Source of the DNA: Scyliorhinus canicula
Lineage: Eukaryota
Assembly: GCF_902713615.1 (NCBI RefSeq)
Contig: NC_052164.1
Coordinates: 95,403,898 to 95,467,897, forward strand
Direction: 5' to 3'
Length of the DNA: 64,000 nt
Position numbers and translations under genes: made by a program
Shown here: piece by piece, positions 3,559-62,105 of the stretch
Position numbering within the stretch: the first letter of the stretch is position 1
Layout of the letters: each line of letters starts with the position of its first letter
The notes under the pieces: model-generated
What the model saw: only the letters and a program-made list of their open reading frames with translations
What the model was told of the DNA's origin: nothing
Database searches by the model: none

Positions 3559-3559
3559 C

Positions 3560-6378: not shown

Positions 6379-6444
6379 CGCTTGCATTGCACTTACCAGT
6401 CTTTGATGTGGTTGATATTTGGGGTTGAGTCACTCATCCATGGA

Positions 6445-25624: not shown

Positions 25625-26410
25625 TTGTTTCACAGTGCCAGGGTCACAGGTTCGATTCCCCGCTGGGTCACTGTCTGTGTGGAGTCTGCACGTTCTCCCC
25701 GTGTCTCCGTGGGTTTCCTCCGGACGCTTCGGTTTCCTCCCACAGCCCAAATATATGTGGTTTAGGTGGATTGGCCATGCTAAAATTGTCCAAAAAGGTT
25801 GGGTGGGGTCACTGGGTTGAGGGGCTAGGGTAGAGGCGTGGGCTGAATGGCCTCTTTCTGCACTGTAAATTCTGTATACACCTCCTGCTGCCTCAGGAAG
25901 GCAGGCAGCATCATCAGAGACCCCTTCTTCCAGGCCCTTCCATCAGGCAGAAAGTACAGAAGTCTGAAGACTCCGCACATCCAGACATAGGAACAGCTTC
26001 TTTCCCCACAGCTACTAGACTCCTCACAGACTCTCCCTCGGACTGACCTATTCCCTGTAGAACACTATTCACGATGCCCTATGCTGCTCTTGCTCATGTA
26101 TTTGCTGTTGTTTGGCCCCTTGTTCCGCACTGTAACCAATCACTGTTTGTCGATGTACCATTTGTCAATGTTCCCTGTTGATTATCCTTTTATGTCTATT
26201 ATGTACGTACTGTGTCGTTCCCTCGCCGCAAAAAAATACCTTTTCTCTGTACTTCCGGTACAGGTGACAATAAATCAATCAAAATCTCCCCCCTGTGTAC
26301 CTGAACACGCGCCGGGGGAATGTGGCGACGAGGGGATTTCCACAGTAACTTAATTGCAGTGTTAATAATGTAAGCCTACTTGTGACACTAATAAAGGATT
26401 ATCATTATTA
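25625..26410 (+). mobile_element. Cluster: HE1 SINE, Rex1/Babar 3' end, SINE tail
   Basis: Similarity to other copies in this window. Confidence 0.75.
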
Positions 26411-26558
26411 GAGGACCCAATTAGTTTGCAAAAAGCACCTGGGTAATAGGAATCTTCTTGCATCTGATTTTCAAAACCTGGCTTTTTTTTCTCTGTTTAA
26501 ACAGCTGGAAAATGGGTGAGGTGTTGGAATTCCAGTGAATAAAACTGCGTCATATGCA

Positions 26559-29500
26559 ATGCATGTCAATCGCTGGAGTCGAGCTGAGGACGGGTGCAGT
26601 AGTGATCAGGAAGTTGACGCAGGTATTGGTGTCAAAGATCCCGCCCATGGAAAAGGAGCTGTTTATATTCAGAGATATATATATATACACACACAGATAA
26701 AAGGAAAGCATTCATCAGCGTTGCCCAGATTCCCCCAGTAGGTGCAGTGAAGGTGGAAGTGCCCCAGGTTTCTGCCTGGGTGCCTGCATTGAAGGCACAG
26801 CATGCTGTACAAGGTGACCAGCCCGGACAGCCTGCACGACCAGAGCAGCAACGACAGTGGCATAGACGACTGCTACCGGAGGAGCCACCGCTCCCCCCTG
26901 GCCTGGGAGGGTCCCCTCTCCTGCCGGCGACTGCTCGCAGCCAAGTCCCTCCTCTCACCCCTTTTGCCTCCTGGGACCCAGTGAAACCACCGCGGAGGAG
27001 AGCCAGGCTGGTAAGAGTCCTTCCTTGTCAGGACGCAATGTTATAACCCCAGCTGTAATGCAAAAGGTGCCACCGCCAACTGCAATGTGTTGGAAGTGCT
27101 TCAGGTTCCTTGGGATGGACAGGTTGTATCATTGCCGAGTGAAAATTGCAAATGAGCCTGCCCTGAAATGAATTGATAAACGAGGATGAAGAAACCCGAC
27201 AGGAGGGCTGGCTTGGAAGCAACTTTACTGCTGTGCTGGCACAAAGAATAAAATGATGTGCACAATGGTTAACATTGTGGCTTCACAGCACCAGGGTCCC
27301 AGGTTCGATTCCCCGCTGGGACACTGTCTGTGCGGAGTCTGCACGTTCTCCCGTGTCTGTGTGGGTTTCCTCCGGGTGCTCCGGTTTCCTCCCACAGGCC
27401 AAAGACGTGCAAGTTACGTGGACTGGCCATGCTAAATTGCCCGTAGTGATCAAAAAGGTTAGGAGGGAGTTATTGGGTTACGGGGATAGGGTGAAAGTGA
27501 GGGCTCAAGTGGGCCGGTGCAGACTCGATGGGCCGAATGGCCTCCTTCTGCACTGTATGTTCTATGTTCTATAATAAACTGGGGACTGACCTGATCAAGT
27601 CAAACATAAGCAAAGTGTGTCAAGCCAGTGTGAATGCTGCTGGAGTTTTAGACATAATAGTTCATTGCTCCAGCCTGTGCCTCTTTATTTATTTAAAGAT
27701 GGTCTATGATCATGTTATAAATTATGATTCTGGGGGTTATTTGTATCGTCATCACCAGTGGGCACCTGCCTCCCAGGTGATTTTCTTTTTGCAATAGACG
27801 AATGGACTCTCTATACATCACAAAAAAACAGGTTATCTGATCATTTGTTTCACTGCTATCCCTGGGGCCATACTGTGCTCAAATAGGTTGTCATATTCCC
27901 GACATCACAGAATTGTCAAAGGGCAGAAGGGGGCCATTCGGCCCGTTGTGTCTGCACCAGCTCTCCCAATGAGCACTGTGGCTCAGTTGGCAGTCCCCTG
28001 CCTTTTCCCCTCGTTTCTATTCAAGTAATAATCAAATGCCCCCTTGAATGCCTCGATTACAAGGGTACAAAATGCATCAAAGATTGTAAAGGGTTTTTGG
28101 GAGATGTTGAAGTCATGAAAGGTGCCATATAAATGCAAGTCTCTTTTCCCCAAGTGCTGGAGCTCAGAGCTTCAGGCAGACTTTACTTTGAAACCGTGCG
28201 GGTGTATGTTTGCTTTGACGTGAGCGATAAATGGTAGGGGCGGGAGGAGGGAGGAATAACGAACAGGATTGAGATAATGCTGAAGTGGTAATCACAGAAC
28301 AAGTTGGAATAATGCAAGGTGCTGCGCTTTGTAAAATACTGAACTCAGAAAGTTTGGAAATAGCTCAAATTCTTGGAAATAGCGCCGCTTAATTGGATCA
28401 GATATGTCCTGGAGAATTTAAAACTCTGCTATCTTTCAAGAATCGAGATTTGAAATAAGATTACCCTCTTTTTGAATTTCCTTTTGTCTATTTCACAGTT
28501 GGGCAGAAATCTGTTCTTCGTCATCTGCTCACTGCTACATTATTTTACCACAGAAATCATTTTTGCAGATATAATTTCCAAATTAGTATTACATCAAATT
28601 ATAGGTGGTTATTTTGTTTAACTTCAGTGCACTTCAACAAGGTGCAAATGAATGAACAGCATTGCTTTTGCTGTCCGAAATTAATGGAGCACTAAAGTGC
28701 CAACATTCTCAATTTTGGTGTAGTTTATGGCTATTGGTTTCTCGTTGATATACTGACTGCTCATTTTAAGGGTGGACTTTTGCTGGTGAGAATTGTACCA
28801 AAATTCTTATGCTGGTTTTTAATCAAAACTTACTTTTCTTAGGCTCAAAGAATCGTATAGATACGCTGTACCAAAAAAAATACTTGGGGGTAAGAGTCCG
28901 CCAGCCAGTCGAGATCTCCTTCGCAATTATCGCATGGCAAGGTGACGATTCCAGAGATAGGCAGGTATGGAGGGATATGTCTATTGCACCTGTACAGGCA
29001 GTTCCTCTTCTTCAGAGAGAATAGATTTCAGAATTTTAAGTATTAAATCACCATGCAACAACTATTAGCAGGGTTGGGGAAAATTGCGATAATCAGATCC
29101 GATTCTCGGGGGGGGGGGGGGGGGGGGGGGGCGGGAACAAGGTTTCTCTGACCTAGTGGTAAGGTATTTAAAGTGGGAAATTTTCTTTAATATTTGTTGG
29201 AAAACAGGTTTGAAATTAGGTTTTTAAGGAACTTTCATTCTGTTTCTTACAGCTAGATGTGGCCTGGAAATCGAATAATCGTAAGTGGCTCAATCGTCAG
29301 TAGCTTTAAAATGTCCTGCTTCAACGTACCTGATATTGTGCCTAACTTGCTTATTGGTGGCTCTATTGCAGTGAGAAGACGTGTGGTCCGAGAGGACTGT
29401 CCATGGTCATCCTTACACCACCAAACGGAAAAACAGGTACGCACTGTTAGGCTGCCAGAATTCACAGCTTGGAAAAGACAGCAAGGCCAGCATTGATGGC

Positions 29501-32500
29501 CCATGCCTGGCCTTCCAGAGAAGATGCTGATGGGCGTGCTTCTGCTTGAGTGTCAAGATATAGCCGGGTGACTTCCTCGGCCACTTTAGAGGGAAGTTAG
29601 TTGACCGTGGCACTGGAGTCACCCATTGACCAGGTAAAGATGGCAGGTTTCCGTCCCAGTCAACCAGTGGGTTTTGGTGACAATTGACAGCTTCATGGTC
29701 CCTCTTTGCAATATCAGCACTAACGTTTAAATTCCGGATTTTTCTTAAGCTGAATTCAAGTGCTTAAATTCTCATGGTCGGATTTGATTTGCATTAATAG
29801 GTGCTATTTTAATGGAGTGCTAAGCCCAGTCAAAGTGTGAAAATGTTGCACAGTGCGGGTTTTCTGATTCGTGTTTCTAATATCAGCAGTAAATAGTAAA
29901 TCGAAGGCCCAGAGTGAGGCTCTGGGGACCCAGGTTCAAATCCTGCCGTTGCAGATGGTGAAATTGGAATTTAAAAGTGTAATGATGGCCATGAAATCAT
30001 TGCGGATTGTCGGAAAAAACCATCTGGTTCACTACTGTCCTTTCGGGAAGGAAATAGGGGCTTTTCACAGTAATTCATGAAGCCTACTTGTGACATAAGT
30101 TATTATTATAAATCTGCCGTCCTGACCTGGTCTGGCCGACATGTGACTCCAGACACACAGCAATGTGGTTGACTCTTGACTACCCCTAAAGAGCAAGTAG
30201 GAGTGGGCACTAGATGCTGGCACAGCCTGTGATGCCCACATCCCATGAACAAATTTTAAAAAAGTTACAGAGCTTGTATCAAGACTGACTTTGCTGCCGA
30301 TTTTAAGAATGTTAAGGACATCTTGAATCCGTGATTGATTGCGACAGCTTTCTGTGAATTGATGCAATCTAATGATAGCTTCCAATTTTGTTTTTCTTTT
30401 TTCCCCAGAAGAAAACAAGCACTTTTCCACCAAGGAATTTTGAAGAGCTTTTTGAAGACTTGGTGGAAGTTCTGGAGACAGATCTGAAGCAAGGTTCCTA
30501 CCAGACTGTACCGAGCATATCAGAAATGGATTTCCAGGTGGGTTACTGCACTGGCTGCCCAGTCAGTTTCCCAGCTTCAAACACTGGAAATCAAGAGCTG
30601 CAAACTCACCAAGGAAACTTCCACCACCTTCCGAGCCACTTCTCCAAGGCTGATTCAACCTTCCCTGATCTGGTGTCGATAAACCCCAAACCTCCTTCAC
30701 ATTTGGAACCGGAGGCTTGGAACTTTTCGCCCGGTCAGTTAACGGTCTTCACGGATGAACACTGCGGGAACACCTCCGATGAAGAGTGTCAGCCCCGCTA
30801 TGCTCAAAATATCACGGGACAATCTCTACCTTGTTCCCCTTCTACCGAGGCAGACTGGTTTAGCCAGGCTGAACTGAACATATTCAGAACGGTAAAGCTC
30901 CACACGTTGAAATCAAGCATCTGCCAGACACCTCTCAACAGCAACATTCTTCCAATGATTCAGCCTTGTCTTTCTTCCAATTTCAACTGCGATATGTAGA
31001 GGATAACCTTTGCACTGTATCTATGCCGGAAATACTCTCTGTGGACAAGAATGGCAACACGTAAGTGCCTGCATTAATTGTAGATTTAGATCCAACAAAT
31101 ACCCAAGAAGAGATTTCATGATAGATTTTTTATAGCACTTGAAAATGGCCATTTGCCTAATTTGCTCGGTGCCAGGTCTTTGATGAGCTCGCCAACTAGT
31201 ATTGACTTACGGACTACGTACACTGCATACGGCTTTAGTTTAGGCAGATACCATGGTCGGTGCAGGCTTGGAGGGCTGAAGGGCCTCTTCCTATGCTGTA
31301 TTGTTCTTTGTTCTTAGTCCCACCCCATGCTTTCTTCCCTGCAGAAAAAACAATGTCTTTGGTAAAGTGAGAGCAGCTGATCATTAGATGATGCAGCCTA
31401 GTGCAAAGAGTGATTTAACAAATACTAGAATATTCTGCATGTGCCTGCTTAGCTCTGGGTGTTGTAACTTTGCGGCTGCCATACAGTCAGTGCTAAATGA
31501 TTACAGCAACAAGTTTTCAGGGGCTGTCAAACCCCGTCATTGTTTCTGCATTCAGATTAAGGAAATGGCCAGCCGCTTTGGTCTATCGCCCTGCAATGAA
31601 TTTTGCTTTTTGCCAGTTACTCATTTGAGACCACACCTTGTGCAGCGTCTCTACCCATCAAAGGCATGGTCTCAATTCTTATCGTTTATTGCTGCACATA
31701 TGTTAGGATTTTTTGAAGGAGTCGATGGTTGGGCCCCTATCCGGCACATATTAGAAAATGACGCACTTCAGTAAAGGACCTCACCTCCCTTTTCACACTT
31801 TCCTAAATAAATGCATAATACCAGAGATAATCCATTGTTTTTTTTCTTGGTAAATTCAAATATTTTATTTGGGCTTTGAATGAATAGCACAGGCGAATAG
31901 AACTGTTTACTGTGCATTTTTCCAAGGAATATGTTGATTCAGAGCTTTACAAATGAGGTGTGCACCGCGCCATTCCTCGAAATGTAATCTGCTTCTGTGT
32001 ATCTGGACATTTGACCTTTAAACAGTAGAGATAAAACAATGCGATCAGCTCTGATTAACTTTGCCTACGAGTTATTCAGTTGAATCACCTGGAAGTGAAT
32101 CATCCAATAATTGGAGGCGTCTTGAGATGAGTTTAATGCTTTAGTTGCAAAGAGTGATTCAGATTGCAATTATCACTTGACTGAATTATTAAGCACACCG
32201 AATTTTAGCTGGAAGATTAGATTCATTCAGAGCTTTGAATTGTCTGCCTTATTTTTTGCTTCACTGCCTTGTTTAATTATCAATAACAGAGCACCCTGTT
32301 TTTTAAAAAATTTCGACAGGATGTTGCATAATGCTGTTATTCAGGGAAAGCGAGCCTTGGCGTATAGCTTAGCTTGCAGGATGGCCACGTGGGCAGAATT
32401 GATGCGAAGGACTCCAGAGGCCGAGTAAGTCATTAGAAGTCTTCAAAGGAAGTTCGTTTTTTTTTTGCACTTTATCCTTTTCAGAATTATTTTCTGCCCT

Positions 32501-35500
32501 TGTGTTAATGGAGGCTTTTAGATTACAAAAATGTTGCAAACAAAACAAAAATGTTCACAAACCCACGACAATCAGATTTGTTCTCAATTAAGTCATGAGT
32601 TTAGAATATTGTTATCCTTCGTAAAAGAACTGCAGTTACTCGTGTAGATTACATTGTTTATTACCTTGGTTATTTGTGTAGATGCCATCGGTTATTTCAT
32701 TCTCAGATTAAGACAAGCTATCTCTGTCTAAATCTGTCTGGAGTTTGCACATTCTCCCCGTGTCTGCATGGGTCTCACCACAAGCCAAAGATATGCAGGC
32801 TAGGTGGATTGGCCACGCTAAATTGCCCTTTAATTGGAAAAAAGAAAATTGGGTACTCTAAATTTATTTTAAAAAGGCTACCTCAATCATGCTGACAATC
32901 AATTGAAAATGTGTTGTATGTATTTCATAAAGCCAAATTAAAATTGTTTGCAAGAGAAAGTGAGAGAGTATATATATTTATGTTGACCAAAATAAAAACT
33001 TACATGATCCAAAACTTTAAAAAGATAAAGAGTTAACTTTTTTTGTTGCAAATGTGGTCACTTAATTGTAAAAATATTTTGTTAAGAAGATCCATCTAAG
33101 CGGTATTTTGGGCCATAACTTCAGGCATTTGGGGGGGCACCTGAAAGATGAGCACGGAAATGTCACTTGGAAATTCCCAGGTCAGAGTTTGCACCAAAAT
33201 TGACCAGAAGGGCTGTGGGTAATTGCACTGTGCTGGGAACCGTCTGACAAAGTAATTTAAATTGCCAACTTCCGATTGTTCCCCCAAGGTTACACCAGTA
33301 GGGTGCGATTCTCTGACCCCCCTGCCGGGTCGGGGAATCGCCAGGGGCTGGCGTCAATCCCGCCCCCGCCGTGTCCCGAATTCTCCGCCACCAGAGATTC
33401 GGCGGAGGCGGGAATAGTGCCGCGCCAGTCAGCGGACCCACCCCCCGGCGATTCTCCGGCCCGCGATGGGCCGAAGTCCCCCCGCTGTCAAGCCTCTCCC
33501 ACCGGTGGGAATCCAAACACGTACCTGACCAACGGGACTGCGGCCCGGGCGGGCTCCGGGGTTCTGGGGGGGGCGCGGGCTATCTGGCCCCAGGGGGTGC
33601 CCCCACGGTCGCCTGGCCCGCGATTGGGGCCCACCGATCGGCAGGCGGGCCTGTGCCGGGGGGGGCACTCTTTTTCCCCCCTTCCCCTGCGCACTGCGCC
33701 GGTATGACGTCAGCAGATGCTGACGCTCCGGCGCATGCGTGGAATTATGCCAGCCGGCAAAGTCCTTTCGGCCCTGGCAGGCGTGGCGCCAAAGGCCGTT
33801 CACGCCATCCGGCAGAGCGCCAACCACTCCGGTGCGGGCCTAGCTCCTCAGTGTGAGGGCTTGGCCCCTAAGGTGCGGCCCGACGCCGGAGTAGGGGAGA
33901 ATCCCGGCCATAGTTACTCAAAAATTTAGGAAAATAAAATCTCTTCCAACTTACAGCGCAGTACAGGCCCTCGGCCCTCGATGTTGCACCGACATGGAAA
34001 AAAAAAACTAAAGGCCATCTAACCTACACTATGCCCTTATCATCCATATGCTTATCCAATAAATTTTTAAATGCCCTCAATGTTGGCGAGTTCACTACTG
34101 TTGCAGGTAGGGCATTCCACGGCCTCACCACTCTTTGCGTAAAAAACCCACCTCTGACCTCTGTCCTATATCTATTACCCCTCAATTTAAGGCTATGTCC
34201 CCTCGTGCTAGCCACCTCCATCCGCGGGAGAAGGCTCTCGCTGTCCACCCTATCTAACCCTCTGATCATTTTGTATGCCTCTATTAAGTCACCTCTTAAC
34301 TTCTCTCTAACGAAAAAACCTCAAGTCCATCAGCCTTTCCTCATAAGATTTTCCCTCCATACCAGGCAACATCCTGGTAAATCTCCCCTGCACCGTTCCA
34401 AAGCTTCCACGTCCTTCTATAATGAGGCGACCAGAACTGTACGCAATACTCCTGCGTAACTATTTTAAATACCCCCAGGCCGCTCCCCATACAGGACCCC
34501 CTCTCCACATCAACCCACCCCTGCCCCCCCACAATGTGCCTGATTCCCCAAGGGACACCCCCAACCCCTGAATAACCACGGTATTCCCATCCCATTGATC
34601 TCACCCCCCCCCCCCCCAGCCTTAGGATTCGCAACCGCATGGGACCACCACTCCAACCCCATCCCAAACCCACGACTCTCATCCTCGAGCCGCCTCTGGC
34701 TGAATCCCCCCCCACCTCTCGAACTGACCCCACAACCCAACCCAAAATCACGAAAAAGTGGATTTTTTTTGTTTCCTGTGGAGGGAGTGAGTTGGAACTT
34801 TAAGGTAATGTGTTGCAATATTTACTGTTTTCTTTGCACAGACTGCGCTGCACTTGGCCGCAGAAAGGAATCAGCACCTAATGGTGAGTGACCTCATCTC
34901 ACTGGGCGCCCAAATCAACGGGAGAGACTATTTGGGGAAAACCCCAGTGCATCTATGCGCAGAAAATGGATTCCTCCGGGTTTTACACGTAAGTAAAACA
35001 GTTCAGTGCCACTTCAGGCCAGTCCTAATCATCTCAGATTGTGAGTAATTATCACGATGGTCGCCCCGCCAGTAATCTCATTAACCATCATTTCCAGGTA
35101 ATAGAGAAAACCTTGAAGAACGGAGCAGTTGTGCACATTGATGCCGTTGACAATAATGGTAGGTATCCCTTTGCAGGCTCGAAATAATCCTTGTTTCATT
35201 GTCATGTTAATTATTTATGCATTTTAAAGTTCCTCGTGCAATTTAGGATGTGCAGATGACGGGCGCAAACTGTAATGGCCTATGTAAGCCAATTCTAATG
35301 CTTCAAGACAAGGAGTTCATGGAGTTCATGTTGATGGGATCAGGATCACATATGCAGTTTATGAAAACTCTCGGCAGCACCCGGAGAATTCTTTCAACGA
35401 TTGGGTGGGATTTGTTTTTGGCCCTATCCGCCAGCCAATGACGGTCCCCCGTGGCGAGTCCACTGGGCAGCGGGAAGGGTGAGCCACACAAAACACTGTA

Positions 35501-38500
35501 GACCTCGGCGGGACCGGAGGCAAGTCCTGCCGGCAATGAATGACCATAAGACCATTAGACATAGGAGCAGAATTAGGCCACTCGGCCCATCGTGTCTGCT
35601 CCGCCATTCGTTCATGGCTGGCATTTTTCTCATCCCTATTCTCCTGCCCCATGACCCCTGATCCCCTTATTAATCAAGAACCTATCTATCTCTGAATGGT
35701 GAGCCATCTCTACTGGTGGAAAATATACCACCTGTTTGGGGGGGGGGGGGGGGGTGGGCGGGTGGAGGGGGGGGGGGGGATGGGGGGTGGGGGGGGTTGA
35801 GCAGAAATTCCCACCCATTGAGTTGGAAAATCTGATTGAACAATACCTCAAAAATGTGGTGGTTACGTTGAAGCTGGAACCGAATTGTGTTCAAACCTTT
35901 ATGACTGGTGCTGCTTAGAATGTACTTCTATTGTATGTGCATCCCAAGTTTAAACTTGCACAAGAACTTCATAAACGCCCCATTAACTTCAGAGACTTTC
36001 AGACGGGGTCTTGCATGCACCCTGCTTTTGTTTTTTGGAAATTCAGTTCTAACTCATGCTTTTGATATTCACAGCTCCCAGCAAATGTGAATACTAATCA
36101 TCTACCTTTTGTTGTAAAGTTCTGACGCCGTTACACTGTGCGGTGTTGGCTCATGCTGCTGCAGTGAAAGAATTTGGGAACTCCGAGATGAACGGTAGCA
36201 CAAAGAGGTTCCTCACGTTGAGGAAGGAGCAGTGCTGGATGGAATGAGAAGCTTGCTGAGGATGGGATCTTCCCTCTCCATGCAGGTGGGACGGTCACTC
36301 CGGTCCCGGACCCTGCGTGCTTTATTTCATTTGGGTTCTGTGGGAGAAATCTGTTGCCGAAAAATATTGGGGTCAGGATAAAATAGCTACTGGATAATTT
36401 TTAAGGTTCAGTCCTTTCTCAGGATTGTTGTAAGCAAGACTTTTGATGGGTGCCCTGCCTGTGATTTTTTTCTATTTCTCCTCGTTAGACCAAGTAGAGT
36501 AAAAACAAAGTATTTATATAATGAGTTCCACCATCAAGGAACACCCCAAAGCGCTTGAGAGGAATGATAACAGACATTTGGCACTGAGCTACATAAAGAA
36601 TGAATCAAAGGCATAGTCAGAGGGTTTGCTTTAAAGAAGCACGTGAAAAGAGGAGGGACAGGAGGAGAGGTTTAGGGTCAGGATCCTAGAGTTTGGGCCC
36701 TGATCAGCTGAGGACACAGCGGCCAATGACAGAGAAGTGGAATTGAGGGATATACAAGAGTCCAGAACTGGAGGAATAAGGAAATGCTACCCTCGGATTT
36801 AAAACTTATTAGCACCATGGTTTTCAGCCCATTATACCTCACGCCTATGTTAATTCACAGCAAAGCAATTCATGGAGGACACAAATGAACATAGTAATGT
36901 GTCACGTTTGGTTCAAAAACACCAGGGGCTGGATTCTCCAGCCCGCTGCGCCACATTTCTGCCTCGACCCGCCGGCGGGATTCTGCGCTACGCCGGCGCT
37001 CAATGGGGTTGCCCACCGTGGGGCAACCTTTCGCCATCGGGAAACCCCCGGGCGCCAGCAAACGGAGTATCCAGCGGCGGAGAATCCTGGCCCATGTCTG
37101 CAACATTCATTTGGAGACCTTGACTGGAGACTGTACTTCTGTCATATTGGGCAAGGGTTCGGTTTGACATTAATGCAAATCTAGGAATCCAGCCAGCACA
37201 CTGTCCAGCCTGGGGACACTGTTCCGTGGGCAAAGTGTTGGAGCTGTGTTGGTACCAATGCAACATCGGCCAACAGTTTGGAGAGAGAAGGGGAGGGAGA
37301 CAGGGGAAGATTGAGGAATCTCCCCAGATGTGTGACTCTTCCTGTTCTTTCATTAAAGGATCTGAATGGACAAAGTGCCATCGATTACGCTGAGCAAGTA
37401 AATGACACCGAAGTTCTGAACTTCCTTAATGGCTATTTTGATAGAATGAAAGCCGCACATCACGAGGTACGTTTATTCAGTAGAACCAATTGAGCAGGTG
37501 ATATATTTATGTTTTTCATTTTAGCGAGGTATATACTCGCTAAAGTAAAATTTCAATCATTTACATCGGATGTGAATCTCTGCTCTCGTCTGTGGTGGGA
37601 CCCGTTGTGAGTGAGAATGGAACGTTCAGCGTTCCAGCCAAAACTCCATTCACTTTCCATTGCTGGAAAATCACAGCCACCAACAAGGACGGACGATTTC
37701 AACCGTTTTGCACCAAAGCATTAGGGCAGCACGGTGACATAGTGGCTAGGACTGCTGCCTCACAGCGCCAGGGACCCGGGTTCGATTCCGGCCACTAAGG
37801 GACAATTTCACGTGGCCAATTCACCAACCTGCATATATTTGGACTGTGGGAGGAAACTGGAGTACCCAGAGGAAACCAATGCAGACACGCGAAGAACGTG
37901 CAAACTCCACACAGACAGTCGCCCGAGGCCGGACTCAAACATGGGTCCCTGGGGGCAGCACGGTGGCCTAGTTGTTAGCATAGCTGCCTCATGGCGCTGA
38001 GGTCCCAGGTTCAATCCCGGCTCTGAGTCACTATCCGCGTGGAGTTTTCACATTCTCCCCGTGTCCGCGTGGTTTTTGCCCCCACAACCCAAAAATGTGC
38101 TGAGTAGGGGGGATTGGCCACACTAAATTGCCCCTTAATTGGAAAAAATAATTGGGTAATCTAAATTTATTTAAAAAAAAGAAACATGGGTCCCTAGCGC
38201 TGTGAGGCAGCAGTGCTAAGTACTGTGCCGCCGTGCCACCTCACTCCTGAACTACCCCCTCTACAACCTCCTGCGGCAGTGCGCAATGCACGTAAATGAA
38301 TATTTTTCAGCAGTGTTCAGTTCTCACAGTGTCGCTGTGAAAGTTAGGCATTTTGTAATTCCTGCATTTAAGCACTTCTGTGTGACTGAGAACTTGCAGC
38401 TTCCACACACACCTGACTCTGCAGTAGACTGCATAAACCTTTTTTTTTCTTGGTTGTTACTCAATAGGAAATTCTCTTTACTTCTTAGCTATCTTGCATA

Positions 38501-39735
38501 ATGCCTAAGATTAAGTAGTGTGAAGCAGCAATTAGACAAAAGACACCAGTGATCTTTTCCGGCAAATGCAGGAGGTGCAACACCCTTTACCTGCTCCCGC
38601 CTCACCGTTCAAGGGCTCAACGATCGGTTCAGGTTAAGCAGCGTTTACCTCGCACTTCCTTCAATTTGGTCCATTGTTTTCGCTGCTCCCAGCTCCCAAT
38701 ATCGACTCCTCGACACTGGGGAGACTAACTGTAGACTGAGGTGACCTCTTCGTGGAACACTTTCCCTCAGCCCACAAGAATTTACACCAAACTTCCTGTT
38801 GTCTTCCATTTTAATTCAGCACCTTGCTCTCGTGCCCATACGTCCTGTTGTGACGCTCCAGTGACACCCAACACAAGCTGGAGGAGCAACATCTCATCTT
38901 CCGGTTGGGCACATTACAAGCCTCAGGACTCGATGCTGCACTCGGGAACTTTTGACCTCTCCCTTCTCTAAAAACCCCGCTTCTTAAATTTGTGTTATTC
39001 CATGCATGTATTGCCTCAATGCAAAACACCTCCCCCCTCCTTTCCCAAAGCCATCTGTCTTGTGTTCTTAAAGTTACTACTTTTGGTTGCAGTTTCTATA
39101 TTCTCCCACCTTTCCGCTCTGTCGAAGAGCCTACAGACTCGAAACGTCAACTCTGTTTCTCTCCTGAAGGACGTTGGCCGATCTGCTGAGTTTTCCTCGA
39201 GTCCTCTGTTATTGGCCGGAATTCTGCGGCAGTCGAGTCTCTCTGTTCCCGCCGGCAGCAACCCCTTGCCCTTATTTAGGCTCCAATTTTTTTTTTAATA
39301 GACGTCTTATCTTTTAAACCATGTCTTTGTATTCTATATATTAAAAAATGTAAATATACGTGTTGCAATCAGTGACATTATTAATATTCTCTTGCAATCC
39401 AAAAGGAATTTATCCCTTCCGGAGTACTCGATGTAATGGATCAAAATGCCAAGTTAAAAGAACTGGTTCCAGGGGGACAACTGCTTCCTTGTGACATTTT
39501 CCTGCACACCAGTGTAGGTAGGTCAAAACACAAAATGATTTTCTGGGGCTGCAAAATGCGTAACAAGACAATTTTTGTTTTACGACAACGTAAATCCTAG
39601 AGAGCACGCTTTAAATCATTGTCACCACCTTTGATGTTTGCAGCATGCATACTTACGCCCTCCAAAATATTAAAAGACAGTTCTGTTATTCTCTTCCAGG
39701 AGCTCAATAAGGGACACGACATCGGCTGTCAGTGA
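26559..39735 (+). CDS. Multi-exon IkappaB-zeta (NFKBIZ)-like atypical IkappaB with an OCA motif and about 4-5 ankyrin repeats, roughly 520-570 aa
   Basis: Phase-consistent GT-AG exons: 26505(ATG 26559)-26622, 28843-28964, 29253-29280, 29372-29436, 30409-31060, 32320-32424, 34842-34988, 35098-35158, 36120-36285, 37359-37466, possible 39406-39517, last exon from 39700. Segments LSFFQFQL..SVDKNGNTMLHNAVIQGKRALAYSLA, TALHLAAERNQHLMVSDLISLGAQIN..GKTPVHLCAENG and LTPLHCAVLAH..LLRMGS parallel IkappaB-zeta ankyrins 1-4. Needs 1-nt corrections near 30873, 32387 and 36232. Confidence 0.85.
27260..27572 (+). mobile_element. HE1-type SINE (intronic)
   Basis: Matches other copies; (TATGTTC)n tail. Confidence 0.88.
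28843..28964 (+). CDS. Exon encoding the OCA-type peptide KKYLGVRVRQPV[R]DLLRNYR
   Basis: TTAG acceptor and CAG|GTATGG donor; phase 1 in, phase 0 out. Motif resembles POU2AF1 YQGVRVKEPVKELL. Confidence 0.8.
33301..33909. mobile_element. GC-rich MITE, putative PIF/Harbinger type
   Basis: Termini GGGTGCGATTCTC...GAGAATCCCGGCC; internal similarity to 53958-54564. Confidence 0.75.
33950..34453 (-). mobile_element. CR1 LINE 3' end
   Basis: EYCVQFWSPHY..RGLDRVD..TRGHSLKL..FFTQRVVRPWNALP. Confidence 0.9.
34842..34988 (+). CDS. Ankyrin-repeat exon (intact, 49 codons)
   Basis: Pyrimidine tract plus CAG acceptor, GTAAGT donor; TALHLAA and GKTPVHLCA motifs. Confidence 0.93.
36925..37093. mobile_element. 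Short MITE
   Basis: TIRs GGGCTGGATTCTCC...GGAGAATCCTGGCCC. Confidence 0.75.
37723..38240. mobile_element. Nested SINE cluster; poly(A)-tailed + SINE at 37951-38181 with a 14-bp TSD
   Basis: TSD AAACATGGGTCCCT at 37937-37950 and 38182-38195. Confidence 0.88.
38555..39200 (+). mobile_element. Penelope-like element 3' end (GIY-YIG remnant and hammerhead motif)
   Basis: Degenerate FQVKQR..TSFNLV..GET..RL motifs; CTGTCGA-AGAGCCTACAGACTC-GAAACGTC at 39119-39148. Confidence 0.78.
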
Positions 39736-40389
39736 GACAGTCCACAAATTGACAAGTGAAGTCAAGACATTGTGAAGCCTGAGCTGAGGTTGAAAGCAAA
39801 GCATGTGCACTTACATATAACCGTTTGTATTTTCTATACACACATATATACGCACACACAAACCATTTGATGAATAAGTGCACGGACCTGCTGAAATCGA
39901 TTCCGCAAAAAACAATTTGCTATAATACAAATTTGGGCTGTTTATAAACCAATGTATTTTACTTTTATCTGCAAAGAAATGAGTACAAGATGTTCTTAGC
40001 TCCAGTGAGGCTCAGGCTACTTAAAAATGCAACAAGGGTTAAGTGTTGCAGACATTGCAACAGAGAAAGTGTAACGTTGCGAAAGAGTCGTAGAGCAAGC
40101 TAAAGTTGAAATCGTCTTGTCATTTTCAAGATTACTTGGACAAAAGCGAACAATCAGGTTTAAATGTGGTTACCCAGTGCAGAGGATCCATGCAAGCAGA
40201 TACATACAGATGCTTTGACGACCTCATGTTATTGCACATAGCCTGCCCAAATTAAATTATGAGCCAATGTTGAACTTAATGGTGATCAGCACTTGACACT
40301 TTCTTGTTGCTAATGCATTGGATTAGTCAGTTGCTTCAAACAACCACTAAATTGAAATAAGATGAAAGAAAATTAAGCTGCTTCCAAAA

Positions 40390-40756
40390 ATATTTTTGGA
40401 ATATACCACTGGGCAGCACGGTAGCATAGTGGTTAGCACAATTGCTTCGCAGCTCCTGGGTCCCAGGTTCGATTCCCGGCTTGGGTCACTGTCTGTGCGG
40501 AGTCTGCACGTTTTCCCTGTGTCTGCGTGGGTTTCCTCCGGGTGCTCCGGTTTCCTCCCACAGTCCAAAGATGTGTGGGTTAGGTGGATTGGCCATGCTA
40601 AATTACCCTTAGTGTCCAAAATTGCCCTTAGTGTTGGGTGGGGTTACTGGGTTATGGGGATAGGGTGGAGGTGTGCGGTTGGGAAGGGTGCTCTTTCCAA
40701 GAGCCGGTGCAGACTCGATGGGCCGAATGGCCCGCTTCTGCACTGAAAATTCTATA
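40390..40756 (+). mobile_element. HE1-type SINE in the putative 3' UTR
   Basis: Full-length match to other copies. Confidence 0.9.
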
Positions 40757-40851: not shown

Positions 40852-40866
40852 GGTTTCTGTGAAACT
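40852..40866 (+). promoter_or_regulatory. Roquin-binding constitutive decay element (CDE) stem-loop
   Basis: GGTTTC-TGT-GAAACT fits UUC-YRY-GAA with a 5-6 bp stem, about 1.1 kb downstream of the stop codon. Confidence 0.6.
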
Positions 40867-43015: not shown

Positions 43016-44599
43016 TTTAAAAAAGCATTCTAAAACCAGGAATACTGTCGCAATATTTCCTTTGATTTAGTCAGCGAAGTTTTCCAACTTTATCATTCTG
43101 AAAGGAGTTCTGGATTCGTAATCTCTTCCTTCGTTAGAAACCAGCCTTTGTTGTCGGTGCGTGTCCTGTGACACAGCTTCCATTTGAATGGAATACGTCA
43201 CTGAGGCCGAGTTCAACAGGGGTGGTTGGACTATTTCAGGAACTAACCAAAACCCTGAATTCAATGAGCTCATTATTATCGCGGTGGAGGCATGAATCTT
43301 ATTAAACTTATCCCAACAGCAACAAAGATATTTGGACAAACCAGACCAAATCTTTCAGTAGCTGGGCCAACAGATCAATGGAGTTTTGCTCAGAAAAGGG
43401 AAGGAGAATTAGTGAAATTTTGATGCCTTTGTTTAGCCACCACCCATGTGGTGCAAGTAATAGGAGGTTTCCCAAAATTTCCATGGGACCATATCTTATT
43501 TTTTTTTGTCTGACCTTTGTAAGCATATGGGTTACATGCATGAGCATATTGACCCATAAATTCCATGAAGTCCTGCCGCATGCATATGTGCCCTAAAAGC
43601 GCACTGCGTTCAAACCTCCGAATGGGGTTTTTTGTTTACCTGTCGGGATATAAATGCTGTGCTGAAATGCATCAGTGTAAAGTGATGGGGCAGTGCTAAC
43701 TTTGCTTACTTGCCCCGATTGATAGGTCACTGTTTACGTCTGCTTATTTACACATTTTCAATTCTGTTCCGGCTGCAGTGTGGGAAGGCAGAAGACATAC
43801 AGGAGGTTGTTTAAAATATATGGAATGGGCAGAAAATCATGGAAAGATTTTGTTTTACAACCTTGTCATGACATTCTGCTGTTAATTCCATTAAAAGTAC
43901 TTCATGTGTAACAAATGGGTTTGAATCATGGAAGTGTCTCTTATATGGTGCAGCTAAAGGTCATATGTGAATTAGCAATTTTGTTTTATTCCAGTTTAAG
44001 AATCTCCCTCGTGCAATGTTGATCCTAGAAGCCTCTTAAGTAGTGAGTTTGATATGGTGAAATGAGTTCTGCATTTACTGTGAGAAATATGTAACTTGGC
44101 TATTTCAAATGCTTGAGATGACATATGCAAGACTCCTCTAAGCTGATGGTGAACTATCTCTCTGATAGGTATTGCAGAATGCAATGCAGATTGAAAACTT
44201 GATCTCTAGATCGCCTGGCAACTTTTGCTTTTGGACATTGAGTTTTTAAAATGAATGATATGTCCCTCCCTCCCTCCCTTCCCTCCGTCATTCCCTTCCC
44301 TCTCTCCCTATGTGCAAAAATATGGCAACAGAACAGTTGTAGTAAGTTTTAAAATATATTTTATTACCATAGTTGAAAATGTTGACATAGTTCTCATCCC
44401 AAATGTCATGCTGCAACCACTTAAGTTAAGCGTTAACTTAACGTGAATATGCTATCAAATTTTGTATTGTCCAACGTTATTTTTGTAAATAAATGTTTTT
44501 CATTGAACTTTTACAGACTGCTACAAATGTCTTATTGCAACATCGAAAACACAACATTTAAATACATGATCATTTTTAAAAAGTTTTGAAGCTACCAAA

Positions 44600-44786
44600 T
44601 TATTTTTTTTCCCAATTAAGGGACAATTTAGTGTGACCAATTCACCTAACCTGCACATCTTTTGGGTTGGGGGGTGGAACCGCACGCAGACACCGGAGAA
44701 TGTGCAAACTCCACACCGACAGTGACCCAGGGCCGAGATACGGACCCGGGTCCTCAGCGCCGTGAGGCAGCAGTGCTAACCACTGG
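44600..44786 (-). mobile_element. Poly(A)-type SINE
   Basis: Matches the copies at 41294 and 52181. Confidence 0.8.
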
Positions 44787-52180: not shown

Positions 52181-52406
52181 TTTTTTTTAAATTTAGAGTA
52201 CCCAATTCATTTTTTTGTTTTCAGGGAAATTTAGCGTGGCCAATCCACCTAGCTTGCACATCTTTTGGGTTGTGGGGGCGGAACCCACACAAACACGGGG
52301 AGAATGTACAAACTCCACATGGACAGTGACCCAGAGCCGGGATCGAACCTGGGGCCTCGGTGCCGTGAGGCAGCAGTGCTAACCCACTGCGCCACCGTGC
52401 TGCCCT
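52181..52406 (-). mobile_element. Poly(A)-tailed SINE with a 15-bp TSD
   Basis: TCCAGGCAGATTCTT at 52166-52180 and TCCAGTCAGATTCTT at 52407-52421. Confidence 0.88.
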
Positions 52407-53957
52407 TCCAGTCAGATTCTTAATTAGATATTGAAAGTCAAGTTTCCTGCACTACAATGAAATGCTTCTGTCAAGACGTAAGTGTTTAAGTGCTGTAAAG
52501 CACTTTGGGGTCGGTTGAAGTTGTGAAAGGTTCTATACAAATGCAGCCGCTCCCTTTTTAACTCTTTAGTTGCCTCAACAATATTTGAGTAGTAATCTTT
52601 ACCCACAAAATAAAAACTGACAACACAGAAACAGAATAATCTTTGACAGTAAAGGGTTTGGGGACATTCTTGGATTATGGTTCTCCGTCCATGCACGTTC
52701 TGAACAAACATGACATCGCGATCTTCATCCCGGATGTGTGATATTTTCAGAGAGAAAAGAACTGGACAGTTACGGGGAGAAAGCAGGGGAGCAGGACGAG
52801 GTGAGTGCTTTCGCAGAGAGTCAGCATGATTAAATATTATCCTTCTGTGCTGTAGGCATTCTATGATTCAGCCCTGATAAGTGTCTATTATTTGGTTATT
52901 CAGCAAAACTGTAGGAGTTGTATTTTTCTGAGAATGTGCTGGTTTGTGATAACAATTAAGTCAGCCAAATGTGACACACCTACACTGATCATATAATGCA
53001 TAATTAGATAATCAAGTTCTGAATTTATGTAAGCTAATTGACCGAGTGACGAAGTTTGTGTACACGACAGAAGATTGATGCTTAATCAGTCCCTTCGACT
53101 TCCGGCAACCTCAGCATTGGAGAGCACCATAATGTAAGGATCCAAAGAGACTGATAACTTTAAAAGGAAGTTCAGACTTCGGTGAATAGCTGAAAGAATG
53201 ACATTGCAGGGTTTCAAGTATTCAGACTGTAACAAACAAACTAAAAGCACCATGACTATACATTATTATTGCAGGGAACTCATACTTTAAACTACAGAAC
53301 AGAATTTTCCCTTTGTCTTTGTACCCAACCAAAAGTCCCACTCCATGGTTATATATTTCGCATTGTCCCTGAATTTGACATGCTCCCGGAACAGGCCCAA
53401 GCTGATTCTGACCTCCCAACGGTTTCTTTTCATTCTTTTCACCTAGAACAGCTAGCCGTTCATGGTGAAGGTTTTTCCCACAAGGTTCTCCCTCCAGCTC
53501 AAGCTAGGTGAATCCTCCAACCCAGTTTCAAATCATCGCAAATTTGGTCTTTTCAATCTGAGTGTCAGCATCCACCTTCATTCCTGTGTGATGGACCATA
53601 GAGACTTTCAGTCATGTGTTGTCTTCTCGCTCTGGATCCCAGCAGATTGCCGGTTTCTGTGCGTTTTTGGGGATATCTTCGAAAACCTTCCCCTCTCTAA
53701 GCCCTCTCCATGGCAATGTGAATCACATTGGCCTTGTATCCAGGCAGAAATGCTGATTACCTGTTCTTTTGACCCCAACTTTGGACCCAACTCTATTCTA
53801 TCATGGAAGTAAATAGACAGCTTAAAAGTAAGCTGTTTGCAATCCAACATTCTGAATACCTTCCTCGGACTTTCGAAACTAACAATCTTTTTTATTCAGC
53901 CAGGCTTTTATTTTCACAAAGTTCCAACATTCAATACAATTTAGAAGAAAGTATAGG

Positions 53958-58731: not shown

Positions 58732-60362
58732 TCAGGGACTTATCCTTGAGAGTCTGAAGAATTCCTCCGGGAAATCATCCTTTGGTCCAATGTCCTCATA
58801 CACATTTCCGGCATCTACTAAATCGTGCTTGTCTAACTGGGAAAGCCGCTGCAGCATCTGTGGCATCACAGAGGCGCCTAAATGATTACAAAAGCATTTA
58901 ACACAGGTTATAATGATACATAGCAAAAGGCAAATAGCGATAAAGATAATAAATCCATGAAACAGATAGGTGGTCCAGGAACTAGACCACAGTCCTCCCC
59001 ACCAGTCGTCCGAGGAGAACTGGCGGAGTCTCTTTACCCCATCCCTAATGTGGTCCACTAGGTGAGTAATGTTCTCCGAGCTATCAGGGATATAAGTACA
59101 GCATTCAGAACCCACTACAGCACATGCACCTCCCTCGCTGGCGAAGAGGTAGTCTCGAGCCATGCGGTTCTGTAAGGCAACCGTCCAAACAGCTACTAAC
59201 TCTGCGCTGAGCTCACTGAGTCCTTCCGCGGTATCATTAGCCACCTGCTCCAATATATTCCGGAACTTTAATACTGCCGAACTGTGGCCAAAGGACAGTA
59301 GCTATCACCTCCCAAGGTACAAGGGACCTAGTGGTTCGGGCATGGGGATGTTTGGCTAGATCTGTATAATGGGTGATGCCAGGGACTACAAAGCCCATAT
59401 AGCAAGAACCTGACCAATTTTCCAGCAACCAGGGATATGCTTTATGTCCGCATATAAAAGAGGTATCATTGTATGAGGTCAAGTTCCCCTTGGCGTCCGT
59501 CATCATGATTCTAGTCAGATCCCCCCTCCAGGGGCCGCCACTTGTATGGTTTTCTGTTGCTGACCAATTAAAGGTGAACAAGCCTTTTTGTGTAAGATTA
59601 GTTATGGGCGGTTGCCAAATCAAGGCTGGTACCTACCGGGTGGGTCCCATTGGCATGATCCTTTTTAAAACATATACTACCTTTTGGAAATTTAGCATAC
59701 TTGGGAAGGATCAGGTAGGGCGGCTGACGGGTTACAGTAAATTTTGGCCACCACCATCCTTTAAATCTGCTCATATTGAACCCGGCCGATCGCCAATCTA
59801 TCATATCTTGTGTATCATTATCAGGGTCGGTACGATTACATCGCAGAGCCCATTCTGCGACCTCCTCGATCAAATAGGAAAGAGGGACCAAAGGAATACC
59901 CCCATGGGCATGGCTGGGAACATGCGTACATACCCAACAAGAGGAGACATTCAATTTCTTTGCATAAGTATAAGACATAAAAGGAATGAATTCACAGTCA
60001 CATGGTGTGTTGCCCGCTTCCTCCTGGTAGGCGGGTGAGTATGAATAGTCTTATACTCAGGAACTCGTGGCTTGCCTTTCCCTCGTACACCGATAGTCCC
60101 ACCGGCAAGCGTAGCGATCGCAGGTCAGGGATCCGCGGGTAGTCAGGAACCGAGGCTTCTGCTCGTCTTGATGAATAATGGTGGTACAAGTATCCACCGG
60201 AGTTGCCGTCCATAAGATCTCATCTGTGGTGCTGTTGGCACAGCTAAAGGTGTCCTCACGACAAAGGTGCAGAATTCGTCTGCCGGGTCTACATCGCCGG
60301 TCGCTAGTAAATGTAAACTGGATGGCGCTGGCGAGGATCACTAGTAAAAAGAGCAGCTTCAT
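58732..60362 (-). pseudogene. env: ERV gamma-type envelope (frameshifted)
   Basis: Signal peptide MKLLFLLVILAS; SU CWVC motif; RTTR cleavage site; immunosuppressive domain LQNRMARDYL; CX6CC (CAVVGSECC); hydrophobic TM. Confidence 0.92.
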
Positions 60363-60419
60363 CGTGGGGTCCTGCTCCTATTCCGAGTAAGGTCGTATGT
60401 ACCTAAACTTAAAACGAGA

Positions 60420-62105
60420 GTTAATAATCACGAAAACTTCACTAGCTTACAGTGGTGGGTGTGAATCCACGCATTGCATCCTTTAACTTTGACTGCCGTG
60501 GGGGTGGTTAGGAGAACTTGGAACGGTCCTTCCCAACGTGGTTCCAACCCCTTCCGTGTTCAATTGCAGATCATCACATGATCTCCTGGTTGTACAATAT
60601 CAGAGCTAGTTAAAGGTGGCACTTCCTCTTGTGCGGCATGTACTCCTAAGTGGAGACTCTTTAATACTTTAGTCAAGGCTAGTATGTAATTAGCCATTTC
60701 TGTAGTCATGTGGTGGAACTGAATGTCTCGGGATGTATGACAGTCCCAGGGGGTGCGAAGGGGTCTTCCGTACAAGATTTCAGCGGGGCACAATCAAGTC
60801 TTTTCTGCTGGGGTGGCTCTTATTTGAAAGAGTGCAATAGGTAATAGTTTCAGCCAAGTGGCTCCAGTCTCTGCTTGTAATTTAAAAAGCTTAGTCTTTA
60901 AAGTTTGGTTAGCTCTTTCCACTATCTCAGCTGCTTGGGGCTGGTAGGCGTAGTGTAACTGCTGTTTAATTCCTAGTTGAGTGCAGAATTCTTTATTAAT
61001 CTGTCCCAGAAAGTGAGGTCCATTATCAGAGCTTAAACGATAGGGAATTCCAAATCTTGGTACAATTTCATGCATAAGAACTTTTACTACAGTTGAAGCC
61101 TTATTATCTACAGTAGGATAGGCCTCTATCCATTTTCTAAACACATCAACAATCACTAATACATGCTTATAACACTGGCATCTTTCCAACTCAATGTAGT
61201 CCAGTTGCAGGGTCTCAAAGGGACCCTCGGGCAATGGTGTTTTTCCCTGCTCACAGGGCACTGCCTTACCAGGGTTATACTGCTGGCATATCAAGCAGTG
61301 ACTGCTAATTCGTTGGGCTATCTCCTGCAGTCTGGGATGCCACCAGGTTTTTAACAATATATCACCTGTAGCGCGAGCACCACCGTGAGTTGCAAAGTGT
61401 ACTCAATAGGTCACCCAGGCTGCCAAAGCAACGGGTATACATGTCTGCCCTGCTGGGGTGACCCACAGCTTATATTCTTTATCATTTGTACATCCCAATT
61501 CTTCCCATAACTTTTTATCGCTAGCAGGAACGTCCTCCTGTAGCTGGATTACATCAGTAATGGTCGGCATAGGTTTTTCAGAGGGAGACTTGTCTTTTGA
61601 GCTTTTAGTCTGGCTCATCATTTTGGGCACTACCATGGCTTTTGAATGGGAGGCTTCTTTTGCTTGGTGGTCTGCCTGCCTATTTCCTTCATCTACTGGA
61701 GTTTTTTCTTTCGTATGGGCAGTACACTTTATCACTGCTACCTTTTCTGGGAGCAAAAGAGCTTGGAGTAATTGGGTTACTAGCTGCTGATGGGAAATTG
61801 GGGTGCCAGCGGATGTTAAGAATCCTTTGATCTTCCATAATTGACCAAAATCATGTACGATTCCAAAGGCATACCTGGAGTCTGTATAAATATTTACTTT
61901 TTGCCTGCTCCTAGTGCGCATGCGCGTATTAGTGCGAACAATTCTGCTTGTTGTGCAGAAAACGGTGTTTTGAATGCTGCTGATTCTACTGTCTCCCCAC
62001 CCTGATTGATTATAGCATATCCTGATAACTGCTCCCCCCTTTCACCGATGGAAGCACTTCCATCTGTGAACATGGTTAGGTCTGGGTCGTTAAGAGGGTG
62101 AAAAT
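60420..62105 (-). pseudogene. pol: ERV pol 3' half: RNase H and integrase (gamma/epsilon-like)
   Basis: FTDGS..SAQQAEL; NIYTDSRYAFG; LQLDYI..SSDNGPHF..VERANQTLK; [19 protein letters not shown]. Confidence 0.92.

Follow-up and report, generated by a model that had tools for sequence, protein, structure and literature searches.

NFKBIZ-type genes encode seven ankyrin repeats and a GVRVKNSVKELL-type OCA peptide, and have neighbours of the CEP97/NXPE3/ZPLD1 type. NFKBID (IkappaB-delta / IkappaBNS) and BCL3 are not known to carry an OCA peptide. That IkappaB-zeta, the NFKBIZ product, links NF-kappaB to POU/Oct factors was demonstrated only recently; the protein is described as a nuclear atypical IkappaB acting as a dual NF-kappaB/POU coactivator (Alpsoy et al. 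2024, cited in PMC11393961; structure 9bor, PMC11293385). Its hallmarks are a cap helix and an extended repeat 4 (Zhu et al. 2024; PMC11293385). Surveys of the IkappaB family, such as the 2023 salmonid census, omit the zgc:113279 family, to which the gene described here belongs.

We analysed a 64,000-nucleotide stretch of the catshark Scyliorhinus canicula genome (the window) and resolved a plus-strand gene of 12 coding exons (CDS 26802-39710, Table 1). In its product of about 596 aa, an IkappaB-zeta-type ankyrin domain follows an N-terminal half that is disordered and bears an OCA peptide and an acidic helix. GT-AG borders were found at 11 of 11 introns, all 22 splice dinucleotides being intact, and shark orthologues matched the window on every exon in tblastn searches, far beyond chance (best E 7e-115). 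An earlier note on this DNA had proposed an IkappaB-zeta paralogue at 26505-39775, a span that brackets the CDS well. The peptide strings it quoted were all recovered on the plus strand where it had placed them, namely FFQFQL..DKNGNT at 30972-31060, MLHNAVIQGKRALAY from 32321 onward, NQHLMVSDLISLGAQIN within exon 34842-34988 and LTPLHCAVLAH..LLRMG within exon 36120-36285. Its estimate of 11-12 phase-compatible exons held as far as the 12 exons and their canonical GT/AG borders go; the phases are compatible only once eight frame-breaking indels are bridged. Overall, we consider it likely that the region is the catshark orthologue of a jawed-vertebrate OCA-ankyrin family unseen in mammals and an ancient sister of NFKBIZ, with indels that are most likely assembly errors and a proposed role as a nuclear p50/p52-POU adaptor.

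Table 1. Coding exons of the catshark gene and candidate regulatory elements (window positions).
Feature	Position	Strand	Content
Coding exon 1	26802..27010	+	ATG, MLYKVTSPDSLHDQSSNDSGIDD..., DSGIDD degron-like motif; extra G at 26910 breaks the frame
Coding exon 2	28843..28964	+	OCA peptide at 28881-28939, YLGVRVRQPV / RDLLRNYRMA; 1-nt deletion at 28910 and 2-nt deletion at 28940, jointly frame-restoring
Coding exon 3	29253..29280	+	LDVAWKSNN; followed by a 91-nt intron
Coding exon 4	29372..29436	+	Basic patch LRRRVVRE-TVHGHPYTTKR, candidate NLS; extra G at 29395, 1-nt deletion in A-run 29429-29433
Coding exon 5	30409..31060	+	Acidic helix NFEELFEDLVEVLETDLKQ (30436-30492; FEELFEDLVEVLETDL at 30439-30486), ~150-aa disordered region and, ahead of ankyrin repeat 1, cap helix FFQFQLRYVEDNL (30972-31010); 1-nt deletion at 30880-81
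Coding exon 6	32320..32424	+	Ankyrin repeat 1, MLHNAVIQGKRALAYSLACRMA-VGRIDAKDSRGR; 1-nt deletion at 32387-88
Coding exon 7	34842..34988	+	Ankyrin repeats 2-3, frame intact; Pfam Ank 6e-9
Coding exon 8	35098..35158	+	VIEKTLKNGAVVHIDAVDNN
Coding exon 9	36120..36285	+	Extended ankyrin repeat 4, LTPLHCAVLAH...LLRMGSSLSMQ; 1-nt deletion at 36233-34
Coding exon 10	37359..37466	+	Fifth and last ankyrin repeat, DLNGQSAIDYAEQVNDTEVLNFL...
Coding exon 11	39406..39517	+	C-terminal tail, EFIPSGVLDVMDQ...LPCDIFLHTSV
Coding exon 12	39700..39710	+	(G)AQ, then TAA stop; C-terminus identical to that of S. torazame
kappaB-like site GGGGATTTCC	26332..26341	+	~470 bp upstream of ATG; possible promoter element, weak as a single site
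CDE-like hairpin GTTTC-TGT-GAAAC	40852..40866	+	UGU triloop, 1.1 kb past the stop codon

Other exon structures were rejected. A possible donor site at 28941 and a degenerate stretch at 37124-37300 that resembles a sixth ankyrin repeat were both ruled out by comparison with the orthologues. A 50-nt intron as the cause of the frame change at 30880 would be too short, and the orthologues are uninterrupted there.

The closest protein is that of S. torazame (P0014, an XP entry), which is 92.6% identical to the conceptual catshark protein over 591 aa. In the tree the two form a 100/100 sister pair inside the shark clade, and the family as a whole, from chimaera to birds, tracks the species tree. With the large exon as query, shark proteins were matched at E 5e-42 and 2e-38, and the ESM Atlas returned no match for this disordered exon; the ankyrin exons alone were unusable as queries, the results being swamped by designed and giant ankyrin proteins. 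For the orthologous proteins of Hemiscyllium, Chiloscyllium, Rhincodon, Carcharodon and Heterodontus, NCBI uses the name ‘uncharacterized protein zgc:113279’, which confirms the zebrafish gene that the earlier note had suggested. Other names of the family across databases are LOC428250, ‘NF-kappa-B inhibitor zeta-like’ and ‘OCA domain-containing protein’. To call the gene hidden was thus an overstatement, as the family already stands in RefSeq and in UniProt (‘OCA domain-containing protein’). The gene is an IkappaB-zeta relative already catalogued for other sharks, birds and fish, yet unstudied: in literature searches, none of the names zgc:113279, LOC428250, ‘NFKBIZ-like’ or ‘OCA domain-containing’ led to a paper on the family.

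The family represents a second, older gene with the two-handed layout of IkappaB-zeta and a shorter ankyrin domain, present in sharks, fish, amphibians, reptiles and birds. Among the approximately 200 distinct relatives listed none was mammalian, and the family is apparently missing from mammals. Its members share five ankyrin repeats, the OCA variant GVRV[RK]xPV[RK][DE]LL, an acidic LxxLVEVLExDL helix and a RRRV..HPY..K basic patch, and the window protein carries the OCA variant, the acidic helix and the five repeats. E165 and L171 are invariant in the family; Y86, G88, V89, R90, V91, P94, V95, L99 and R103 are nearly so.

The ankyrin domain matches IkappaB-zeta chain 9bor_A in a single stretch with an E value of 7e-46. 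An AlphaFold model, with pLDDT >90 across residues 330-560, superposes on this solved structure with an rmsd of 1.9 A at 38% identity, and the top Swiss-Prot fold matches are IkappaB-zeta of three mammals. IkappaB-zeta, to which the earlier note had likened the ankyrin region, is the best match in both sequence and fold. IkappaB-delta, with a domain of the same class, is the next-best fold match at 28% identity, and a bird NFKBID (P0139) is 34% identical. BCL3 also has an ankyrin domain of this class, but with seven repeats (PMC11293385), and was absent from the best 30 fold matches.

Like IkappaB-zeta, the catshark protein has an N-terminal OCA peptide, a long disordered middle and a cap helix before ankyrin repeat 1, and its repeat 4 is lengthened by about 28 residues; cap helix and extended repeat 4 are both kept across the zgc:113279 family. 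Unlike IkappaB-zeta, the family has five repeats rather than seven, followed by a tail of about 40 aa. The 9bor_A alignment accordingly ends at chain residue 227, i.e. at repeat 5, and the model shows five helix pairs and then a disordered tail, where an NFKBIZ protein would end at repeat 7. Pro-Val in the OCA peptide replaces the Ser-Val of IkappaB-zeta, and the acidic helix and basic patch are the family's own. In the family, the residue corresponding to mouse D451 remains Asp. As for the residues contacting the p50 NLS (human numbering), the catshark keeps D441 and has Asn for D443, Asp for E477, Ser for H478 and Lys for R514; across the family H478 is replaced by Ser/Thr/Ala and D443 by Asn, and the loss of these two contacts weighs against the main reading.

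The presence of an OCA peptide on an IkappaB-zeta-like protein, also claimed earlier, holds as well. Its motif is near-invariant across the family, its only PDB matches are OCA-B 1cqt_I and OCA-T1 9pfp_B, and it aligns residue for residue with OCA-B (YQGVRVKEPVKELLRRKR) and OCA-T1. A mutational scan of OCA-T1 identified K19 (Arg tolerated), L25, L26 and R30 as critical (PMC12755459), and the catshark GVRVR-QPVRDLL-RNYR keeps a basic residue, Leu-Leu and Arg at positions 19, 25-26 and 30, respectively (OCA-T1 numbering). In contrast to the zgc:113279 family, OCA-B, OCA-T1 and OCA-T2 (POU2AF1-3) are much shorter proteins that lack an ankyrin domain. In human, the three OCA genes lie at 11q23.1, and IFT46 and ARCN1 at 11q23.3. 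That the POU2AF genes and the OCA-ankyrin family share a common origin is conjectural.

IkappaB-zeta being the closest characterised protein by sequence and fold, the gene might simply be the shark NFKBIZ orthologue, with no separate paralogue. The NCBI name ‘NF-kappa-B inhibitor zeta’ on the S. torazame and Heptranchias proteins (P0014, P0006) agrees with this, as does the fact that no second, true NFKBIZ was found from any shark, the database searches with full-length shark, ankyrin-domain and long bird isoform queries being filled by the zgc:113279 family or by generic ankyrin proteins. Nevertheless, we regard plain orthology as very improbable, given five repeats instead of seven and family-specific features common to shark, bird, reptile, amphibian and fish members outside the NFKBIZ locus. 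The chicken member adjoins IFT46 (Pfam IFT46_B_C, 9e-15) and an ARCN1-like 510-aa Adap_comp_sub gene, in a locus that resembles human 11q23.3 and not that of NFKBIZ. Synteny, named as a check in the earlier note, is informative for this chicken gene; the flanks in the shark window hold retroelements only. No IFT46 was detected in the window, nor at a distance of up to 10 kb from the pipefish, tarpon and alligator genes. Identity to mammalian IkappaB-zeta is 38%, whereas the S. torazame protein and its ostrich (Struthio) counterpart in the family share 50%. Furthermore, nfkbiz is an entry of its own in the salmonid census, with a primer that encodes the repeat-7 motif NLENEQ, and teleosts also carry zgc:113279; the Atlas likewise has the 619-aa cluster of the family apart from those named ‘NF-kappa-B inhibitor zeta’ (765 and 651 aa). 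The family-specific features, the 38% identity, the chicken locus and the salmonid nfkbiz support the divergent paralogue proposed earlier, and the paralogy to NFKBIZ would presumably extend to sharks.

The 1.8-kb CDS is broken by eight indels of 1-2 nt (+1 at 26910, -1 at 28910, -2 at 28940, +1 at 29395, -1 in the A-run 29429-33, and -1 at 30880, 32387 and 36233). Such a number could mark a unitary (unprocessed) pseudogene, that is, a zgc:113279 orthologue inactivated in the catshark by genuine frameshift mutations. The searched databases contain no protein from this species, neither transcript nor protein of it appearing among the protein-search results. In addition, derived residues are slightly commoner in the window copy than in S. 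torazame (18 vs 10), its branch is slightly longer and a few otherwise invariant residues are altered (FLYG to FLNG, AEEV to AEQV). All eight indels, however, are explicable as length changes in short single-base runs, the 596 codons of the window copy contain no nonsense codon and every splice site is intact. The terminal branch barely exceeds that of the sister (0.044 vs 0.031), with no accelerated protein divergence. Taken together, the derived-residue counts and terminal branches allow no more than about 0.6% of additional neutral change. With the usual indel:substitution ratio of 1:8-10, this predicts about one indel, so the neutral divergence is far too small for eight. We therefore think inactivation improbable and assembly errors, most likely of the homopolymer type, the probable cause of all eight indels. 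It follows that the animal itself probably carries an intact gene, and that a pseudogene label is unwarranted without read-level evidence.

Based on its architecture, the intact catshark protein would be a nuclear adaptor and a candidate dual POU/NF-kappaB cofactor. With the cap helix lending stability, ankyrin repeats 1-3 may clasp p50 or p52 at the NLS segment. The OCA peptide would bind a POU factor (Oct1, Oct2 or POU2F3) that occupies an octamer site, and the conserved acidic helix could recruit the transcription machinery. The absence of repeats 6-7 may make it easier for this protein than for IkappaB-zeta to settle on DNA-bound NF-kappaB, and the five-repeat family offers a natural test of the role of these repeats. 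It may also explain part of the inducible control of immune genes in non-mammalian models such as chicken, zebrafish and shark. Much more tentatively, and we would not favour it at present, the family could be a fourth, never-studied nuclear IkappaB: an NFKBIZ ohnologue at a locus marked by IFT46 and ARCN1 (human 11q23.3-like) that persists from chimaeras to birds, has been lost in mammals and bridges p50/p52 and POU factors with only five repeats. The mammalian 11q23 OCA genes might then go back to that ancestral locus too, as relatives or as remnants.

Candidate regulatory elements lie on either side of the gene. The CDE motif TTCYRYGAA is not enriched in the window (6 found vs 4.05 expected), and the hairpin at 40852-66 could act as a Roquin-type decay element only with a 3′ UTR that extends so far. 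For the kappaB-like motif the window has 18 matches where chance predicts 11.2, so that the upstream site could be a chance match; the kappaB, octamer and CDE counts all come close to chance.

The window contains no N runs, and its plus strand carries short open stretches at 26.8-39.7 kb. Their translations match the peptide strings that the earlier note had read from the sequence. The gene model was based on tblastn of shark proteins against the window together with by-eye reading of each junction, and comprises 12 coding exons with a summed length of 1786 nt and GT-AG boundaries in 11 of 11 introns. The conceptual protein has 596 aa and is closest to the S. torazame protein (92.6% identity), which points to a catshark near S. 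torazame as the source; the two proteins have an identical C-terminus (..TSVGAQ followed by the stop codon). Unlike these two, lamniform and orectolobiform sharks end in ..EELNKRLNHGCQ, owing to a different splice phase of the penultimate exon. The Mustelus asterias RefSeq model (P0015) has a 30-aa insertion at residues about 129–158 that is absent from all other sharks; it appears to be a retained small intron equivalent to window 29281-29371, and is probably an annotation artefact. Exon 1 encodes a DSGIDD motif (26856-26876) that is similar to the beta-TrCP degron DSGxxS found in classical IkappaBs; most sharks keep the DSGIDD motif, and the bird equivalent is DSGLTE.

Searching 1.84 billion representative proteins with the largest exon (30409-30996) returned two proteins from sharks (E 5e-42, E 2e-38) and one from a ray (5e-7). 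In the source databases the Heptranchias protein is called 'NF-kappa-B inhibitor zeta', those of Hemiscyllium and Chiloscyllium 'uncharacterized protein zgc:113279' and that of Narcine 'NF-kappa-B inhibitor zeta-like'; UniProt labels family members 'OCA domain-containing protein'. The full-length search added relatives in cartilaginous fishes (Rhincodon, Carcharodon, Cetorhinus, Mustelus, Heterodontus, Scyliorhinus torazame, rays and chimaera), in ray-finned fishes (bichir, sturgeon, gar and teleosts) and in coelacanth and tetrapods (turtles, alligator, many birds including chicken LOC428250, caecilians, frog and newt); a further search added lizards and lungfish. No mammalian member was found among the ~200 distinct relatives listed in the protein searches. 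RefSeq and UniProt already list this gene from sister species, and the window holds one more member of this zgc:113279 family. A literature search found no paper naming the family. Four turtle and bird gene models (P0195, P0196, P0165 and P0204; 1076–1354 aa) fuse the gene to a long Pfam-less stretch, probably through read-through into a neighbouring gene or repeat.

The family tree, rooted with one NFKBID sequence, mirrors the species tree, with cartilaginous fishes, ray-finned fishes, then lobe-finned fishes and tetrapods. This agreement indicates that the members form a single, old orthologous group. In chicken, IFT46 (identified by Pfam IFT46_B_C) precedes the family member by 4.6 kb, and the next gene along has a 510-aa product whose Adap_comp_sub and Clat_adaptor_s domains fit ARCN1. 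In human, IFT46 and ARCN1 adjoin at 11q23.3, whereas NFKBIZ is at 3q12.3. Teleosts also possess zgc:113279. A census of salmonid IkappaB genes reports nfkbiz (534 aa), with a qPCR primer encoding the repeat-7 motif NLENEQ, and makes no mention of the zgc:113279 family (PMC10299181). In the Atlas, the 'NF-kappa-B inhibitor zeta' clusters are separate from the cluster of this family. Taken together, the tree, the chicken synteny, the salmonid nfkbiz and the Atlas clusters support the previously proposed reading of the gene as a paralogue of NFKBIZ rather than its orthologue.

Relative to its orthologues, the window gene contains eight frame-breaking indels (see table), and correcting them yields a CDS of 1791 nt, or 597 codons. 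These breaks could mean that the gene is a real pseudogene, which we regard as unlikely, since nonsense substitutions are absent and all splice dinucleotides (22 of 22) are intact. Polarisation of derived residues with seven outgroup sharks assigned 18 to the window and 10 to S. torazame, with 16 ambiguous; the corresponding terminal branches in the ML tree are 0.044 and 0.031. The window's excess of change allows roughly ten neutral nucleotide changes. One indel is usually seen per 8–10 substitutions, and such an excess would thus predict about one indel, not eight. In addition, each of the eight is explicable as a length change in a short single-base run. As decay is not apparent in nonsense mutations, splice sites or divergence, and the indels can be read as run-length changes, we favour assembly error as the quite probable source of all eight.

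We modelled the protein with AlphaFold2 using the S. torazame orthologue as target and a 38-sequence family alignment. The N-terminal half is disordered, except for a short helix over the OCA peptide (residues 95–105) and a second helix over the acidic motif (residues 156–172), and is followed by a confident ankyrin domain (residues 330–560, pLDDT >90), in which a cap helix precedes five helix pairs and pair four is much extended. The top Foldseek match was 9bor_A, the IkappaB-zeta chain of the IkappaB-zeta:p50 crystal structure (216 aligned columns, rmsd 1.9 A, 38% identity). Among Swiss-Prot folds, mouse, bovine and human IkappaB-zeta ranked as the top three, followed by IkappaB-delta. By sequence, 9bor_A alone among natural chains gave a single long alignment, spanning chain residues 12–227, i.e. 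repeats 1 to 5. In IkappaB-zeta the cap helix (residues 417–429) is required for folding and p50 binding, repeat 4 has a 28-residue extension, and repeats 1–3 recognise the NLS segment of p50 (Zhu et al. 2024, PMC11293385). The zgc:113279 family retains both the cap helix, with the Phe and Gln of FFQFQ invariant, and the repeat 4 extension. At the p50-NLS contact positions, D441 (mouse D451) is kept, with Asp for E477, Lys for R514, Asn for D443 and Ser for H478. Repeats 6 and 7 of IkappaB-zeta are absent, and the 'short-ankyrin' label of the earlier note is therefore correct.

The OCA peptide YLGVRVRQPVRDLLRNYR is almost unchanged throughout the family. Its PDB matches were confined to two peptides, OCA-B in 1cqt and OCA-T1 in 9pfp, both aligned exactly on the OCA motif; the short query makes for weak E-values. 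In a deep mutational scan of OCA-T1, the essential residues were K19 (where Arg is tolerated), L25, L26 and R30 (PMC12755459), and the peptide encoded here has a permitted residue at all four positions.

By analogy with IkappaB-zeta (PMC11393961), the protein may act as a nuclear adaptor. Its ankyrin domain would bind p50 or p52, and its OCA peptide would engage an octamer-bound POU factor; the acidic helix could provide an activation or docking element, and the RRRV..HPY..K patch probably serves as a nuclear localisation signal. A kappaB-like site upstream and a CDE-like hairpin downstream would fit inducible, short-lived expression, though both motifs occur near chance: 18 kappaB-like matches were found in the window versus 11 expected, and the CDE 9-mer is not enriched across it.

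Indels, putative regulatory motifs and repeats in the window
Feature	Position	Strand	Remarks
Single-base insertions (n=2)	26910, 29395	+	versus orthologues
Single-base deletions (n=5)	28910, 29429-33, 30880-81, 32387-88, 36233-34	+	versus orthologues
Two-base deletion (n=1)	28940	+	versus orthologues
KappaB-like site GGGGATTTCC	26332-26341		motif match about 470 bp upstream of ATG
CDE-like hairpin GTTTC-TGT-GAAAC	40852-40866		putative 3′ UTR element, 1.1 kb past stop codon
Tandem array, 15-nt unit GCCAGCACCAACACC	1307-1974		about 45 copies
Tandem array, 23-nt unit CGCTGGATACAGTCCGCAGGCTG	3559-6381		2.8 kb, about 123 copies, 93% match
Short interspersed element copies	27257-27571, 32712-32858, 37743-38123, 40396-40746	+	recurring translation ..GSIPG.GHC.CGVCTFSP..
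Short interspersed element copies	2265-2615, 44524-44775, 52224-52451	-	same recurring translation
Endogenous-retrovirus-like remnant	58735-62041	-	RNase H, integrase (rve and H2C2 zinc finger), envelope TM-like piece (TLV_coat)

The 15-nt array closely follows a retroelement integrase ORF (297-1289, Pfam rve 9e-18), and the 23-nt array is GC-rich with several frames open. The ORF pieces of the retrovirus-like remnant are spread over several frames. Several copies of the short interspersed element lie within introns of the zgc:113279 gene.
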